Part shown: positions 4,318 to 58,120 of the stretch, piece by piece
Numbering within the stretch: the stretch's first letter is position 1
Layout: each line of letters begins with the position of its first letter
Sequence record: NC_023568.1
Reading direction: 5' to 3' (one strand)
DNA: 64,000 nt
The notes under the pieces: generated by a model
Database searches by the model: none
Told to the model about the DNA's origin: nothing
What the model saw: only the letters and a program-made list of their open reading frames with translations
Translations under genes and position numbers: made by a program

Positions 4318-5250
4318 ATGAAAAGTACAATGTTTTTAAACAACATCACATGCATCGATCACGCATACGTTGATGAAAACGGTAAAATTAACGGTATGAG
4401 TTACAATCTATGTGTTGAAATCACCGGCGAAGTAGATGAAACTGAGCAAGTCGTAATTGACTTCAGCGGTTGCAAGAAAGCGATCAAGCAGTTAGTAGAC
4501 GAATCTGAACACGCAATTGATCACCGTCTAGTTCTTGTCAACGGATACAGTGAATATGTGTTAAGCGATATTGAAAATCGTGACCGTACACAAATCGACT
4601 CTCCGTTATTCACTGCTGTTTCGTCTGTCAATGACTGGTATCAAGAGATCGTCGATGTATCGCTATTCGATACTGATCTTCACATCCCGTCGGATACGCT
4701 GTACATGAACTATCTAACCGAGTATCTTGAAAATATGTTGCTGAAGCAGCTTAAACTACAAGGCTATCCGGTCACACACGTCACTGTAGAGCTTTCAGAG
4801 AGCTTTGACTTGCCATCATGGGCAAACACGCACGTTTCATTTCATTACGCTCATGGCTTGCGTTCTAGCTCTTCTTATGGGTGTCAGAACATTGCACATG
4901 GACATCGTTCGTTCATTGCAGTTGATGCCATGTTAAACAGTCGTGGTCGCAAAGTACTGGAGCGCATTGCTGAAGAAATGAGCGGCTACATCGTATGGAA
5001 CGACAATCTAACTGCGGAAGGTGCGGTAGCGTATTGTTCACAGCGTGGTAATTTCTATTTGAACATCGATTCAGAAGAAACAATCGTAATCAACACTGAA
5101 ACTACAGTTGAAAATCTCGCGAACTACATTGCAAAAACATACGAAGACGAGTTTCAGCGTATGGGTGTACAGCGTGTATGGGTATCTGAAGGTCTTTCGA
5201 AAGGCGCAGTCGTTGACATCAAAATCAACAAAGAATTACTCTATAAGTAA
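4318..5250 (+). CDS. queD: QueD/6-pyruvoyl-tetrahydropterin synthase-like, two-domain
   Basis: DHAY..G.SY, DHRL, HYAHG..CQNIAHGHRS, TTVENLA; first gene of deazaguanine cluster. Confidence 0.7.
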   Translation: MKSTMFLNNITCIDHAYVDENGKINGMSYNLCVEITGEVDETEQVVIDFSGCKKAIKQLVDESEHAIDHRLVLVNGYSEYVLSDIENRDRTQIDSPLFTAVSSVNDWYQEIVDVSLFDTDLHIPSDTLYMNYLTEYLENMLLKQLKLQGYPVTHVTVELSESFDLPSWANTHVSFHYAHGLRSSSSYGCQNIAHGHRSFIAVDAMLNSRGRKVLERIAEEMSGYIVWNDNLTAEGAVAYCSQRGNFYLNIDSEETIVINTETTVENLANYIAKTYEDEFQRMGVQRVWVSEGLSKGAVVDIKINKELLYK

Positions 5251-24343: not shown

Positions 24344-24799
24344 ATGATTACACTAATTCAAGACCAAAACTCCCTTCAATTCATGTTCAATGATGACCTT
24401 TTGCTATCTGCAACATGGGAATCATACATCGATCAAAACTACAACTGTGAAATGTACAAGACAGCTATGGTTGAAATCCCTTCAATTGGCTGCACTGTCG
24501 TACGCGAAAAATACGACGCTCGTAATATAATCGAAACACTGCTTAAAACACGCGAACTAGAACCAGACGAGTTCGAGTTAATCACAGACCTATTCCCTCA
24601 CGTCGATGTGACTCAAGAAGAACATCACTGGCATTGTGAATGCTGCGGTGGGGTTCATGATACCACAACAAACATATTCAACCAAGAGACTGGTAAAGAA
24701 CTTGAGTTTCATTTCGACGGACATTTTGGTGATAGCACATCGCTCATGCCTCATCAATTACTTGAGTTCTGTCTATATGGTTGGTTAATTGACCAATGA
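24344..24799 (+). CDS. hypothetical protein
   Basis: 151 aa, GAGAG RBS, CECC motif. Confidence 0.65.
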   Translation: MITLIQDQNSLQFMFNDDLLLSATWESYIDQNYNCEMYKTAMVEIPSIGCTVVREKYDARNIIETLLKTRELEPDEFELITDLFPHVDVTQEEHHWHCECCGGVHDTTTNIFNQETGKELEFHFDGHFGDSTSLMPHQLLEFCLYGWLIDQ

Positions 24800-32463: not shown

Positions 32464-32634
32464 ATTGGACTATCTATTATCATCGCAGTATTCAGCGTCG
32501 TGCTAATGATAGACTCACACGAGCAAATCATGTCTAAAGAATACAGAAACTTTGTCTTGATATTCAATGCCATTTGCTGTATAGTCAATCTAGCTAACAT
32601 GATTGTGATTCACAAATACGGAGTAACACTATGA
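32461..32634 (+). CDS. small membrane protein
   Basis: two hydrophobic stretches; AAGGA RBS. Confidence 0.6.
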   Translation: MIGLSIIIAVFSVVLMIDSHEQIMSKEYRNFVLIFNAICCIVNLANMIVIHKYGVTL

Positions 32635-32795: not shown

Positions 32796-33007
32796 ATCAA
32801 ACTATCAAAGCAATATGCATAGACAATACTTCAACTCGTATCGATAAACCAGAACCACCAAGCGGCATTACTCTAGGCAAAGAATATGTCGTTCACATGT
32901 ATAACGTAAACGAACATACAAATAAACCACCTATGATTCGTATTACTAATGACAACAACCAACGAGCAAGCTATGTCGCTGCACGCTTTAATCTATCAAT
33001 AGGATAA
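32792..33007 (+). CDS. hypothetical protein
   Basis: 71 aa coupled ORF. Confidence 0.6.
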   Translation: MNQTIKAICIDNTSTRIDKPEPPSGITLGKEYVVHMYNVNEHTNKPPMIRITNDNNQRASYVAARFNLSIG

Positions 33008-33011
33008 ACTC

Positions 33012-33179
33012 ATGTTCGCACTATCAATCTTAATTCTGATTCTCACTACATATCTGTTTGTAACCGATAAATCAAAACGAACAGTTCCATTCGTGGCTCT
33101 GCTAATAACAACTGCGTTTAACTGTATCATTCAGTATTACCTAATTGATATTCTATCATTGAGCTTTAAACTATCGTAA
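33012..33179 (+). CDS. small membrane protein (55 aa)
   Basis: read manually; AGGA RBS; hydrophobic. Confidence 0.5.
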   Translation: MFALSILILILTTYLFVTDKSKRTVPFVALLITTAFNCIIQYYLIDILSLSFKLS

Positions 33180-33295
33180 TGCAAACACTAATCAATCTAC
33201 TAAACGATATACCTATCGGCTACCTCATGCTTGTTCTATGTGCTCTAGCAGCTATAGCCGGTTGGTGCCTGAGCGATATATCAAACGATGACTAA
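33179..33295 (+). CDS. small membrane peptide (38 aa)
   Basis: read manually; TAATG overlap; one TM. Confidence 0.45.
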   Translation: MQTLINLLNDIPIGYLMLVLCALAAIAGWCLSDISNDD

Positions 33296-33386
33296 AAACG
33301 CTTAGAATCGCTCTCACAGCGTCTCAGAGCATGGTACAGATACGATTGTTTTTAATATATCGCACCATGCCTCGTTTAAATGCACA

Positions 33387-33495
33387 TGTGTATAAATCTG
33401 TGGATAATATGTGTATGAGATTGTGCATAAGTGTCTGAAATCTGTGTATAAAAACATGATTTAGCTGTGCATAAGTCTGTGGATAATGTGGATAA
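33387..33495 (+). repeat. array of eight co-oriented DnaA boxes
   Basis: TGTGNATAA at 33387, 33399, 33422, 33443, 33466, 33478, 33487 and TGTGTATGA at 33410. Confidence 0.85.
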
Positions 33496-33602
33496 CTTTT
33501 TAGTGAAAAAATGGTGAAAGACTCATCGGCTCCTGTGTGGTACGCGGCAGTCTAAAACCTTACACCATTTATGAAAATCTAATTCGCTTCGCATCTTCTT
33601 GC

Positions 33603-33632
33603 TTGACAGCCAGCGGCATTATGTGAGAGAAT
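33603..33632 (+). promoter_or_regulatory. sigma70-type promoter
   Basis: TTGACA-N18-GAGAAT with TG extension. Confidence 0.5.
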
Positions 33633-33665
33633 GCAAAGAGATTTGAACTGCCTACGGAGGTAATT

Positions 33666-33812
33666 GTGATTACATTGGCGTTATTTTATATGAGTCGCGA
33701 CATGCAATACAGCGAGCGACCAAGTGACTTGTACCTTGGTACATGTATTTTAGACTTTGCATTAATCGCCACGATGTTCTGTGGTGTAATGATGTTCACT
33801 GGTAATTGGTAA
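33666..33812 (+). CDS. small membrane peptide (48 aa)
   Basis: read manually; GGAGG RBS, GTG start, TAATG overlap with next gene. Confidence 0.5.
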   Translation: MITLALFYMSRDMQYSERPSDLYLGTCILDFALIATMFCGVMMFTGNW

Positions 33813-34135
33813 TGTTGTTTAAGAATTACAGAGTGAATCGCCATGTTCGTGCTCGTGCTATAGAGTTATTGAATTGTGGTGAGTTGCATCGCGTGTATAC
33901 TTGTTTAGAGTTACATCGTGGTGTGAGTGACGAGATGGTTAGTTTGATTAAGCTTAAACTAAAGCATTTGCAGCGTATGTACGTACGGCAGAGTGATTTG
34001 CCGAATGATTTAGAAGATTGTTATTCTTTTATCTGTGCGTATCACCCGCCTTGTGAACATCGTAAGTTGCGTGAATATGAGCGTAAGTCGTGGTTGAAAT
34101 ACATCATAGAGAACATTAATAAGGTAAAGATATGA
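33812..34135 (+). CDS. hypothetical protein, YTC/RxxWL family
   Basis: RAIELL...YTC and RKSWLKYI motifs. Confidence 0.6.
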   Translation: MLFKNYRVNRHVRARAIELLNCGELHRVYTCLELHRGVSDEMVSLIKLKLKHLQRMYVRQSDLPNDLEDCYSFICAYHPPCEHRKLREYERKSWLKYIIENINKVKI

Positions 34136-35096: not shown

Positions 35097-35128
35097 TATA
35101 TTCTACAGTTTTTGAATTGGAGGATAAT

Positions 35129-36043
35129 ATGACTAGAATTAAATGGACACCTGAACGTCTTAAAGAAGATGCATTGAAATACAAGACTCGTACTGAATGG
35201 TGTAAAAACTCAAGTGGAGCGTACAATGCTGCTCGAAACCGTGGTTTATTAGATGAGTGTTGTGCTCATATGAAGTCAAGTCAGAGACCAAACGGATTTT
35301 GGAATTTAGAAACACTTCAAGAAGATGCATCCAAGTATAATTCTCGTTCTGAATGGGAGAAACGGTCTAGAAGTGCATATTATGCTGCTCAAAGGCGTGG
35401 TTTATTAGATGAGTGTTGTGCTCATATGAAGCCATCGACTAAAACGTTGATTAATCGTTGTATATACCGAATCTATGCTGGCAACGAGATTTACATTGGT
35501 CTAACTTATGATGTTGATGTTCGTTTCCGTGAACATAAAACAAAAACAAAGAAAATTATCAAGTTGATTGAGCGTCATGGTATTGATAATGTGAAGTTCG
35601 AGCAAATAACTGATTACATGGACCAAGAACTCGCTCAGATTGCTGAGGCAGAACACATAGAGAGTTATAGAAACAATGATTGGGTTATTTTAAACCGTGC
35701 AAAAGCTGGGGCGTTAGGGAAAGCTAGATTGAAATGGAATTTAGAAACACTTCAAGAAGATGCATCCAAGTATAATTCTCGTTCTGAATGGGAGAAACGG
35801 TCTAGAAGTGCATATTACATCGCTCAGAAAAGAGGTCTCCTTGATGAGTGCTGTGCTCATATGACACGATTGAAAAGACCAAACGGATTTTGGAATTTAG
35901 AAACACTTAAAGAAGATGCATCCGTTTACAAGACTCGTAATGAATGGCGAACAAAATCAAGTAATGCTTATAGCGCAGCTAAGCGACTGGGATTAATTGA
36001 TGAGTGCTGCGGTCATATGCCGAAAAGAGCCAAGCGAAAATAA
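35129..36043 (+). mobile_element. free-standing GIY-YIG homing endonuclease with repeated DNA-binding modules
   Basis: CIYRIY..NEIYIGLT..V..RF.EH core plus E and N motifs; four W..E.L.EDA..Y..R.EW...S..AY..A...GL.DECC.HM modules. Confidence 0.85.
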
Positions 36044-37864: not shown

Positions 37865-38242
37865 ATGAATCTACACGAACTCATTCGCCAAGCCGCGTCT
37901 GATTTACTTGAAGATGACATCACTTCAAACATCAATAGCTATACGTGCAATCGCATTGTTGATCTTATCGACGATAGCAGTGATTACACTTATAGCGAAG
38001 TTAAAGCAGTTATTCGTGAACTCGCTAAGTCGTTCTTATATGCAGTATTGCGCAATCCCGTCGAAACACTTGGCTTTGAGCTAGAAGAGGCATCACGCTC
38101 TGAACTCAAGTGGATCATGGCTGATTCTTTCTTCTCATCTGCGTTCATTCACGTGATTTCTATGCGCGGTAAAGAAATTGATTTTGAATGTTTCGTAGCG
38201 GCTCGTAAAGCATGGCTGAAACATATCGTGGAGAATGTGTAA
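37865..38242 (+). CDS. hypothetical protein, YTC/RxxWL family
   Basis: SYTCNRI and ARKAWLKHI. Confidence 0.7.
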   Translation: MNLHELIRQAASDLLEDDITSNINSYTCNRIVDLIDDSSDYTYSEVKAVIRELAKSFLYAVLRNPVETLGFELEEASRSELKWIMADSFFSSAFIHVISMRGKEIDFECFVAARKAWLKHIVENV

Positions 38243-38664
38243 TGAAACATCTAAGTGAAATCAAAGTAGCTGCTGCTGAACTGCTAGAAGATGGTGATAT
38301 TTTAACGGATATGTACGGCTATACGTGTAATGAAATTGCGTTTCTTGTACGTTCTACAAAAGATGTAATGGAAAAATATTCGTCTTACGTTGACGTGAAA
38401 AACACGTTATCCGAGATTGCAGCGCCTTTTGTTAAGCGAGTTTATGACAATGCATTACAAGGCAAAATCGACTTGTCTGAAGCAGCACTGTCTAAGCTTA
38501 AAGCCTGTCTAAACGTCGATTATTACCGCGGTACGTTTATTCACGATATTGCTATTCAAGACAATGGCAAAGTAGATTTAGAGCTATTTACTGAATATCG
38601 TCGCCAATGGCTAGAGTTTATCTTGACTCAGCCGAGTGAACATGAAAATCAAAGAAAGGTATAA
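38242..38664 (+). CDS. hypothetical protein, YTC/RxxWL family
   Basis: GYTCNEI and RRQWLEFI. Confidence 0.7.
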   Translation: MKHLSEIKVAAAELLEDGDILTDMYGYTCNEIAFLVRSTKDVMEKYSSYVDVKNTLSEIAAPFVKRVYDNALQGKIDLSEAALSKLKACLNVDYYRGTFIHDIAIQDNGKVDLELFTEYRRQWLEFILTQPSEHENQRKV

Positions 38665-39802: not shown

Positions 39803-39989
39803 TGTTTTAGAAGAGACTTTGCTCGGCGATGCGTTCAACTATGAAATTGTCTCGCCAGTGACGGTTCGGAAAGACAAGTATTCATTTGTAATGCAAGTTA
39901 TAAGTGTAGCTGGTAAGAAGATCGTTAATGGTTATCGTGCAAACATGACCATTAACAAAACGTCTAGTCGATTTAAAGTCATAAAGTGA
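39783..39989 (+). CDS. hypothetical protein
   Basis: likely start MKLKKG within longer ORF. Confidence 0.45.
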   Translation: MKLKKGSVLEETLLGDAFNYEIVSPVTVRKDKYSFVMQVISVAGKKIVNGYRANMTINKTSSRFKVIK

Positions 39990-40154
39990 GAAGCAAAATG
40001 TATAATGGTAATATGAACACTCCCGCGGGAATAGACTTAGACAAGCGTTCAGAATCGTACGAGGATTTCCTACTGAAGAGTAATGACAACTCTGAATATT
40101 CCCGTCGTGTAAAGCGCGCCATTAAAGCGAAACGAGCAAAGCGAGGTTATTAAC

Positions 40155-46133: not shown

Positions 46134-46366
46134 CAAGACAACAAGAGCGTATTCTAGAAGGTCTACGCAACGGCACGATGATCGCATACGCTTACACTAG
46201 CAATAACAAGCTATGCTTTCATGAGCAGCAAAACAGACCGTGTGTATTGCCGATGACGATTACGTGTCGTGCTTTACTCAAGAAAGGTTTAATTTCGCTT
46301 GCAGATCATACGAGCGTATCATTAGAGCATTATCAAGGTGAGGCACAGCATGTTAGCGTTAATTAA
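46130..46366 (+). CDS. hypothetical protein
   Basis: coupled ORF. Confidence 0.55.
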   Translation: MTRQQERILEGLRNGTMIAYAYTSNNKLCFHEQQNRPCVLPMTITCRALLKKGLISLADHTSVSLEHYQGEAQHVSVN

Positions 46367-46610
46367 ATCGCGAGTTGTATACGACAGAATCCCTATTAAC
46401 ACTGCTGAAGAGCTTCGCGATAACATTACTGATGTTCGCATGTTCAATGACGAATTAGACTTGTTCTACCCGTGCGGTAAGCCGGGTATGGTCAAGCGTC
46501 TGTGTTTTGTCAAAGCGGCAGATGTTGATTTCGACGGTGAGACATACGATGATGCACTGACACACTTTCAAGAGAATTACAAGAAGTATTGGGAGGTGAT
46601 AAATGTCTGA
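46350..46610 (+). CDS. hypothetical protein
   Basis: GAGG RBS. Confidence 0.6.
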   Translation: MLALIKSRVVYDRIPINTAEELRDNITDVRMFNDELDLFYPCGKPGMVKRLCFVKAADVDFDGETYDDALTHFQENYKKYWEVINV

Positions 46611-57910: not shown

Positions 57911-58120
57911 ATGCAAATCGATCATCTAAAACTCGATGAAATTCGAGATAAACTGAGATTCTTGAATAATCGCGAGAAAACATTACTCATGGAAGAGATA
58001 ATGCGCGATCTTAGCTTCTTTCATGGAAACAAAGACAAACGTCGTGCTGCTCATTCGTATATGAAGATAGCACATGGTGGAAACTTTCATTTTAAGGATT
58101 TGAAAAATGAGCGCACCTAG
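57911..58120 (+). CDS. hypothetical protein
   Basis: 69 aa ORF. Confidence 0.6.
   Translation: MQIDHLKLDEIRDKLRFLNNREKTLLMEEIMRDLSFFHGNKDKRRAAHSYMKIAHGGNFHFKDLKNERT

Follow-up and report, generated by a model that had tools for sequence, protein, structure and literature searches.

What are eight copies of the DnaA box, the binding site of the bacterial replication initiator, doing in the genome of a lytic T4-like phage? T4-type phages are the textbook case of viruses that replicate with their own machinery, from R-loops and recombination intermediates. The repeats lie in a non-coding gap of Vibrio phage VH7D (KC131129.1; Straboviridae, Schizotequatrovirus; genome 246,964 bp), whose bases 1-64000, identical to the analysed stretch at 100% and with unchanged coordinates, are here called the window. 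An original prediction, made from the letters of the window, had described the repeats as an oriC-like array and proposed that they form either an early origin dependent on host DnaA or a decoy that titrates it. Comparison with related phages indicates that the array is real and under selection, and it is most likely that lytic T4-like vibriophages enlist host DnaA in a role so far undescribed for phages of the T4 type.

A single cluster of DnaA boxes in VH7D

Seven exact copies of TGTGNATAA lie on the plus strand at 33387 (T), 33399 (G), 33422 (C), 33443 (T), 33466 (C), 33478 (G) and 33487 (G), the base at the free position being given in brackets, and a site with one mismatch, TGTGTATGA, lies on the same strand at 33410. 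The whole array of eight thus occupies 33387-33495 (109 bp). Start-to-start spacings are 12, 11, 12, 21, 23, 12 and 9 bp, giving a period of about 11.4 bp or two such steps, and most adjacent boxes are separated by spacers of 2-3 bp. Coordinates, letters, strand and spacings had all been given in the original prediction and were reproduced from the sequence. All eight sites have the same orientation, and seven match the consensus TTATNCACA exactly. The sites, with their state in related phages that carry the array, are as follows:

33387-33395, plus strand: DnaA box 1, TGTGTATAA, of the E. coli R2 type; TGTGCATAA in ValKK3, XZ1 and the QD01 group, TGTGGGTAA in nt-1 and CZ01
33399-33407, plus strand: DnaA box 2, TGTGGATAA, of the perfect R1/R4 type; unchanged in all eight aligned array-carrying phages
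33410-33418, plus strand: DnaA box 3, TGTGTATGA, one mismatch and the weakest site; positions 5, 6 and 8 differ among relatives
33422-33430, plus strand: DnaA box 4, TGTGCATAA; unchanged in all eight aligned array-carrying phages
33443-33451, plus strand: DnaA box 5, TGTGTATAA, with neighbours 21 and 23 bp away, about two helical turns; TGTGGATAA in the QD01 and nt-1 groups
33466-33474, plus strand: DnaA box 6, TGTGCATAA; TGTGGATAA in the QD01 and nt-1 groups
33478-33486, plus strand: DnaA box 7, TGTGGATAA, with no gap to box 8; TGTGGATTA in the QD01 and nt-1 groups
33487-33495, plus strand: DnaA box 8, TGTGGATAA; CGTGGATAA in the QD01 and nt-1 groups

That these repeats are DnaA-box consensus sites is well borne out, and seven exact sites and one with a single mismatch in 109 bp are far beyond chance. 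Both strands of the window together contain 13 exact matches, whereas dinucleotide shuffles give 4.4 +/- 2.1 and reach 13 in 0 of 100 cases. A count over the whole genome, proposed as a check with the original prediction, finds 25 exact matches where about 13 are expected from base composition. Seven of these are in the array and the other 18 are scattered, no two within 300 bp, which makes the array the sole cluster in 247 kb. Perfect TGTGGATAA sites number five in the genome, three of them inside the array.

Conservation follows the DnaA-box consensus

The array is found in the same slot, between the same flank blocks, in 14 phages (17 database records). Over 121 bp it is 100% identical to the VH7D array in phi-Grn1, phi-ST2, R10Z, Va3 and PVA23 and 99.2% identical in R11Z; identity is 95-96% in ValKK3 and XZ1, 82% in QD01, VS1 and VS2, and 86% in nt-1 and CZ01, which belong to the genus Mylasvirus. 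We aligned eight array-carrying phages of the two genera column by column. Variation touches 5 of 64 specified box positions and 4 of 8 positions at the degenerate base (N) of the box, against 21 of 37 spacer columns and 25 of 61 flank columns (Fisher's test: box versus spacer, p = 1e-7; N versus other box positions, p = 0.007). Identity between array-carrying lineages is 89-94% in box columns, falling to 49-78% in spacers. As judged from this alignment, selection is keeping TGTGnATAA with its fifth base free, which is the known degeneracy of the DnaA box.

Phasing is constant as well. In array-carrying phages the spacings are 12, 11, 12, 20 or 21, 23, 12 and 9 bp, and the sole indel inside the array is of 1 bp: the QD01 group has a 1-bp deletion between boxes 4 and 5, balanced by a 1-bp insertion after box 8. 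Counted from CGCACC (33361) through the last base of CTCATCGG (33529), the span measures exactly 169 bp in each of the eight aligned phages. The flanks of nt-1 and CZ01, unlike the interior of the array, carry 12-bp and 20-bp insertions. Conservation and synteny in relatives, which the original prediction had made its first test, are therefore found for slot and phasing across two genera; they do not extend to the whole group, since KVP40 and its close relatives have no array. A 30-mer across boxes 6-8, searched against IMG/VR and metagenomes, matched only VH7D itself and unrelated contigs, and in two scans with flank anchors the sole family member among the matches listed was KVP40 (IMG/VR), the 16-mer anchor being too short for the metagenome collection.

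Host DnaA is a strong candidate for the ligand of the predicted sites, and in our judgement very probably the right one, because the conserved footprint equals the degeneracy of the DnaA box and the phage has no DnaA homologue. Searches of VH7D and KVP40 with E. coli DnaA, whole and domain IV (tblastn, phmmer), gave no homologue, the best E value being only 0.14-0.4; a phage-encoded DnaA is thus rejected, there being no DnaA-like open reading frame (ORF) in either genome. Motifs for CRP, LexA, Fur and ToxR were judged by eye and rejected, because the conserved positions are all nine of the DnaA consensus. Consensus-specific selection in two genera would imply that T4-like vibriophages engage the host initiator.

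The KVP40 group keeps the slot without the array

KVP40, phi-pp2 and PVA8 retain the flanks, the downstream promoter and the length of the slot (170-171 bp) and have no box in it. V09, V07, VH1_2019, PG216 and the TCU phages are probably array-less too, because their flanks match and the array does not. Placed on the taxonomy, the array belongs to Mylasvirus and to several lineages of Schizotequatrovirus, and the KVP40 species group is the only one to lack it. It has not been relocated in KVP40, whose complete genome contains just 10 exact boxes, all scattered, with none of them a TGTGGATAA and none forming a cluster. The KVP40 slot is weakly similar to that of VH7D (z about 4-5 against shuffles), and in comparison with array-carrying phages its box columns are 46% identical and its spacer columns 48-55%; this equal divergence led us to reject a switch of specificity. 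An alternative repeat was not found in the KVP40 slot, where repeated 6-mers are no commoner than a rough estimate of about two chance pairs per 130 bp. The simplest history suggested by these comparisons would be an ancestral array, followed by loss of constraint and neutral decay in the KVP40 group. The array is therefore functional where present, yet dispensable, since the KVP40 clade keeps flanks and slot length without it.

An auxiliary origin as the first-ranked reading

What the array might do has to be judged with its surroundings. The non-coding gap that holds it is, as originally described, 370 bases long, bounded by the end of a 38-amino-acid (aa) ORF at 33295 and by the next ORF start at 33666 or 33690. 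Its features, other than the boxes, are:

33179-33295, plus strand: 38-aa ORF for a small hydrophobic protein, the left border of the gap; unannotated in VH7D, with a homologous ORF annotated in XZ1
33294-33376, plus strand: left flank with three conserved blocks, AAAAACGCTTAGAAT (33294-33308), TCAGAGCATGGTACA (33324-33338) and TTTTTAATATATCGCACCATGCCTCGTT (33349-33376), kept in array-carrying and array-less phages
33340-33360, no strand assigned: AT-rich, easily melted patch ATACGATTGTTTTTAATATAT, 26 bp 5' of box 1; partly conserved in array-carrying and array-less phages
33522-33538, plus strand: conserved block of the right flank, CTCATCGGCTCCTGTGT
33603-33632, plus strand: early-promoter-like site of the sigma-70 type, TTGACA-18-(TG)GAGAAT (TGnGAGAAT), with 10 of 12 matches and a TG extension

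The reading that we rank first, and hold tentatively, at somewhat below an even chance, is that the array serves as an auxiliary DnaA-assisted early origin or origin enhancer that is individually dispensable. Host DnaA would occupy the eight repeats on the phage chromosome and, because the boxes are co-oriented with a period of about 11.4 bp, would be expected to line up on one face of the helix as an ordered head-to-tail oligomer. DnaA assembles in this head-to-tail manner on co-oriented site arrays of bacterial origins. Standing beside the short AT-rich patch and aided by transcription from nearby early promoters, the bound DnaA would open or mark the DNA, which would in turn admit the helicase-loading machinery of the phage (gp59/gp41, Dda). 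We infer DnaA binding, oligomerisation and replication initiation at the array from the sequence.

Strict phasing and co-orientation, the AT-rich patch, the early promoter, the multiple dispensable origins of T4 and the replication-module context of similar arrays elsewhere all favour an origin. Relative to box 1, the AT-rich 20-mer occupies the side on which E. coli oriC has its 13-mers relative to R1. KVP40 as annotated has asiA and no motA, so the MotA-dependent oriF/oriG route of T4 may not be obviously open to KVP40-type phages. T4 itself has five origins that are active early in infection, and several of its origins are individually dispensable (PMC3016281).

Several observations weigh against an origin, and they led us to drop the label oriC-like that the original prediction had used. 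The gap contains no 13-mer-like sequence with up to 3 mismatches and no GATC (0 in 370 bp), there is no run of DnaA-trios on either side of the array, and the boxes point in one direction. We found no conserved IHF site WATCAANNNNTTR, the sole IHF-like match, with one mismatch, being present in VH7D and ValKK3 and absent from QD01, VS1, nt-1 and CZ01; a consensus scan of this kind is insensitive. No turn in GC skew appears, cumulative skew rising monotonically over the window, although this test is weak because skew in T4-type phages tracks transcription, and two of the T4 origins do not coincide with skew shifts (PMC3016281). The AT-rich patch that had been noted to the left of the array holds up at one scale only: 33340-33360 is among the 0.4% least stable 20-bp windows of the genome, but at the scale of 30-50 bp the patch is ordinary, with 17-26% of windows less stable, so that the easily melted DNA amounts to only about 20 bp. 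Nearly all boxes are of strict consensus and not the weak ATP-DnaA sites that drive origin opening, and T4-type replisomes do not use DnaB/DnaC, so that DnaA would have no obvious partner to bring in. Neighbouring genes have no Pfam or PHROG function, and no replication gene or Rep-like gene adjoins. KVP40 and its relatives do without any array, and the constraint on slot length holds in these array-less phages too (170-171 bp), from which it follows that part of the architecture is not DnaA-dependent.

Alternative roles for the array

A rather unlikely but serious alternative is a DnaA sink, the second of the roles originally proposed. The eight sites on each amplifying genome would sequester DnaA and stop initiation on chromosome 1 of Vibrio and, by an indirect effect, on chromosome 2, sparing nucleotides and replication factors and playing no role in phage replication. 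Seven of eight boxes being strict, within 109 bp, the array is denser than E. coli oriC, and all other features of an origin are missing. The annotation of KVP40-type genomes also lists no denA, denB, ndd, alc, gene 42 or gene 56; since the T4 strategy, in which the phage modifies its own DNA and degrades that of the host, is thus not evident, such phages would profit from another means of silencing host replication. In E. coli and B. subtilis, initiation is known to be disturbed when additional clusters of DnaA boxes are present on multicopy DNA (datA and DnaA-box clusters). A passive decoy, however, needs neither co-orientation nor exact phasing, both of which are strictly conserved, and eight sites per genome would count only after much amplification, when blocking host initiation gains little. 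The loss of the array in the KVP40 clade and the want of a conserved IHF site, which the catalytic action of datA requires, further argue against a sink. If the array were one, a non-coding decoy, not a protein, would silence the replication of both Vibrio chromosomes, and this would be a new non-coding route of host takeover.

Control of transcription by DnaA is likewise possible, though we consider it improbable by a similar measure. A DnaA filament would block read-through from the upstream operon of small ORFs, or would modulate the promoter at 33603, and so tie the downstream early genes to the DnaA status of the host. The array does lie between two early transcription units, and all genes flanking the gap are on the plus strand. 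Promoter-like sites are found upstream at 32557 and 33145, with no plus-strand intrinsic terminator predicted between them and the array, and a weak one at 33381-33408 overlaps boxes 1-2. The strong site at 33603 faces the plus-strand genes beyond the gap (GGAGG at 33657, start at 33666 or 33690). It is well established that DnaA bound at single boxes in E. coli can repress or activate promoters and act as a roadblock to transcription, and the constancy of the 169 bp between flank blocks points to a phased nucleoprotein assembly ahead of the promoter. Eight sites, on the other hand, far exceed those of known DnaA-regulated promoters, and box 8 ends 107 bp before the -35 hexamer of the 33603 site. 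That site is retained in KVP40, the QD01 group and nt-1, and the box-less KVP40 clade has kept promoter, flanks and downstream genes alike; the weak overlapping promoter is not conserved in nt-1.

It is considerably less probable that the repeats are iterons for a phage DNA-binding protein that recognises the DnaA-box sequence, for example in competition with DnaA at the host origin, the array then being the phage's own origin or an autoregulatory site. Direct repeats of such number and spacing are typical of iteron origins, most nearby genes are of unknown function, and oriE of T4 has been discussed in terms of iterons (PMC3016281). In search of such a protein, a phyletic screen considered about 20 VH7D genes that are absent from KVP40, compared them with the first 50 kb of nt-1 and tested four. 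The gene at 24344-24799 is missing from the array-carrying QD01, VS1 and VS2 and present in PG216, which is probably array-less; that at 39986-40153 is missing from the same three array-carrying phages, and that at 57911-58120 from the array-carrying ValKK3, phi-ST2, phi-Grn1 and XZ1. All three deviate from the distribution of the array and were rejected. The fourth, 46338-46610 (90 aa, phrog_16301), tracks the array in VH7D-, QD01- and nt-1-type versus KVP40-type phages, being present in every array-carrying phage and not in the KVP40 clade. It is unconvincing as a ligand, since its product is acidic (pI 5.0) and the gene is found as well in D48x/K5xx phages, which have no array in the syntenic region. 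None of the four tested genes strictly co-varies with the array in this partial screen, which covers the first 50 kb of nt-1. The iteron reading also has to contend with a footprint that reproduces DnaA degeneracy, free fifth position included, and with a phage that has no homologue of DnaA domain IV.

A non-functional repeat, made by chance or slippage and bound by nothing, deserves practically no credence: it has in its favour only that the KVP40 clade lives without the array, whereas no shuffle in 100 reaches the observed count, the unequal spacings mean that the repeats are not units of tandem slippage, and purifying selection is specific to the specified box positions across two genera.

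Other features of the gap and its neighbourhood

Other kinds of element were considered for the gap as a whole. An RNA gene was rejected, with no Rfam match at E <= 1, no tRNA or tmRNA and no covarying pairs in either flank. A coding repeat was rejected because the spacings are not multiples of three; the only ORFs overlapping the array are a 47-aa minus-strand ORF in VH7D and a minus-strand coding sequence annotated in QD01 alone. A dispersed regulatory cassette was rejected because the gap occurs once in the genome, with no second copy of it or of its flank blocks elsewhere in VH7D. There is no second repeat family in the gap. The four non-repetitive flank blocks AAAAACGCTTAGAAT, TCAGAGCATGGTACA, TTTTTAATATATCGCACCATGCCTCGTT and CTCATCGGCTCCTGTGT are common to array-carrying and array-less phages and may be candidate protein-binding sites.

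At 60-95 bp to the right of the array (33557-33591 in window coordinates), sequences deposited in GenBank by two laboratories start or stop. Those of R10Z and R11Z start, on the reverse strand, at about 33591; those of PVA23 and PVA8 end at about 33557-33561, and PC-Liy1 and vB_ValM_PVA8 behave alike. Such breaks may reflect the choice of a start point, an artefact of assembly or some physical property of the DNA. On the other side of the array, phi-Grn1 (KT919972.1, 207059-209019) has about 560 bp extra between the homologue of window position 32800 and the array.

The gene just downstream of the array (33812-34132) has a weak N-terminal match to phrog_4354, a multi-copy family of paralogous small early proteins (38212-38664 in the window; at least 6 copies at 20.4-24.6 kb in nt-1). 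A gene resembling GIY-YIG homing endonucleases lies 1.6 kb downstream of the array, at 35117-36043; KVP40 lacks this gene, which is flanked by 3-4 copies of a cysteine-containing module of about 45 aa (...LLDECCAHM...). The GenBank annotation of VH7D is sparse, with 327 features and long bare stretches (for example about 91.8-107 kb and 110-123 kb), and it misses the 38-aa ORF.

DnaA-box arrays in other viruses

Phage-borne DnaA-box arrays are not rare in general, since tight co-oriented triplets are common in viral contigs. IMG/VR holds at least 120 viral contigs, unrelated to VH7D, with three or more tight co-oriented DnaA boxes (L012-L131, for example L054, L079, L066, L064 and L117), and among the contigs listed at least 38 carry five or more boxes, mostly intergenic. 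Neighbours of these larger arrays include genes for RusA, VapE-like and DUF5906 proteins, methylases and helix-turn-helix (HTH) proteins; among the contigs listed, none of the arrays lies by dnaA or dnaN. In three further contigs (L147, about 5076-5105; L152, about 1964-1993; L154, 2232-2261) the boxes were seen by eye to lie inside an ORF, where they read V-D-K-S-V-D-K; the ORF product looks like a winged-helix initiator or a ParB-like protein, and if this is so the origin would be inside a gene, as in lambda O. A blastn search with the array also matches non-coding or hypothetical regions of gokushovirus and other microvirus genomes (H51, H52, H55, H56), which suggests that microviruses may carry DnaA-box arrays too. 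We found no description in the literature of viral DnaA-box arrays as a class, and the number of unrelated viral contigs that carry arrays of this sort suggests that phages make broader use of host DnaA, in ways little described so far.

For the T4-like vibriophages, the element appears, as originally supposed, to be undescribed. Full-text literature searches found no paper that links DnaA boxes to KVP40-type or T4-type phages and none on DnaA-box decoys in phages, the sole match being an in-silico oriC prediction for Bacillus phage G. If it acts as an origin, the array would give the family its first DnaA-assisted one and provide a handle on the start of replication in the MotA-less schizoT4 phages. 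The proposals are readily testable, because matched phages occur naturally in which the same slot either has or lacks the array: nt-1, QD01 and CZ01, which have it, and VH1_2019, which probably does not, grow on the laboratory organism V. natriegens.

Comparison with known DnaA-dependent and T4 systems

E. coli oriC, which we compared directly (232 bp), has 3 strict boxes in mixed orientation, three 13-mers 5' of R1 (TGTGGATAA) and 11 GATC. The phage array is like the arrays of oriC (R1-tau-R5M-I1-I2 and the C-site) in the 9-mer used, in co-orientation, in spacers of 2-3 bp and in a period of 11-12 bp, and its AT-rich patch lies 5' of the first TGTGNATAA as the DNA unwinding element does of R1. 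It differs in that seven of its eight boxes are strict, whereas the arrayed sites of oriC are mostly weak, and in having one orientation where oriC has two opposed half-arrays. The phage gap is also without 13-mers, DnaA-trios, GATC and a conserved IHF site, and its carrier is a lytic phage with its own replisome.

With datA and the DnaA-box clusters of B. subtilis, the array would share the character of a non-origin cluster of high-affinity boxes, presumed to draw DnaA from oriC; it has the high-affinity cluster of the datA type, with 7 strict boxes against 3 in oriC. The function of datA requires an IHF site between boxes, and the phage gap has no conserved one. Chromosomal clusters are looser and of mixed orientation, and the phage element, unlike them, would act through amplification of viral copy number.

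Within the same virus family, oriE of T4 offers a partial likeness. It is a cluster of 12-nt direct repeats that depends on an early promoter (PMC3016281), and, like the array, it combines evenly spaced direct repeats with a promoter of the early mode, and it is an individually dispensable origin; the review of T4 replication that describes it makes no mention of DnaA (PMC3016281). In T4 the repeats (79402-79569) form six 24-nt units (2 x 12), GTTGAAGGTAAT/GTTGAAGGTAATG, by the annotated oriE point; because these units lie inside gene 5, the 12-nt iterons are coding repeats. Unlike the array, they show no likeness to the DnaA box, and they are not syntenic with it, the homologues of T4 gene 5/5.1 lying near 130 kb in VH7D, about 100 kb from the array. 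We know of no role shown for the oriE repeats, and as unrelated coding repeats they were rejected as relatives of the array.

The arrays of viral contigs and gokushoviruses are like that of VH7D in comprising three to ten TGTGGATAA-type sites with spacers of 2-3 bp and one orientation, placed between genes or in initiator-like ORFs. They differ in usually belonging to replication or recombination modules and, for the most part, to what look like small or temperate phages. In P1 oriR, F, pSC101 and RK2 oriV, as in the reading proposed here, a mobile element borrows host DnaA through tandem consensus boxes. Those origins have few boxes, joined by iterons and an adjacent Rep gene; the phage, unlike these plasmids and the origins of temperate phages, has eight boxes, no second repeat family and no Rep-like neighbour, and is a virulent carrier of the T4 type. 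That mobile elements borrow a cluster of DnaA boxes is thus already known, and what is unsuspected is the presence of such a cluster in the T4-type virus family.

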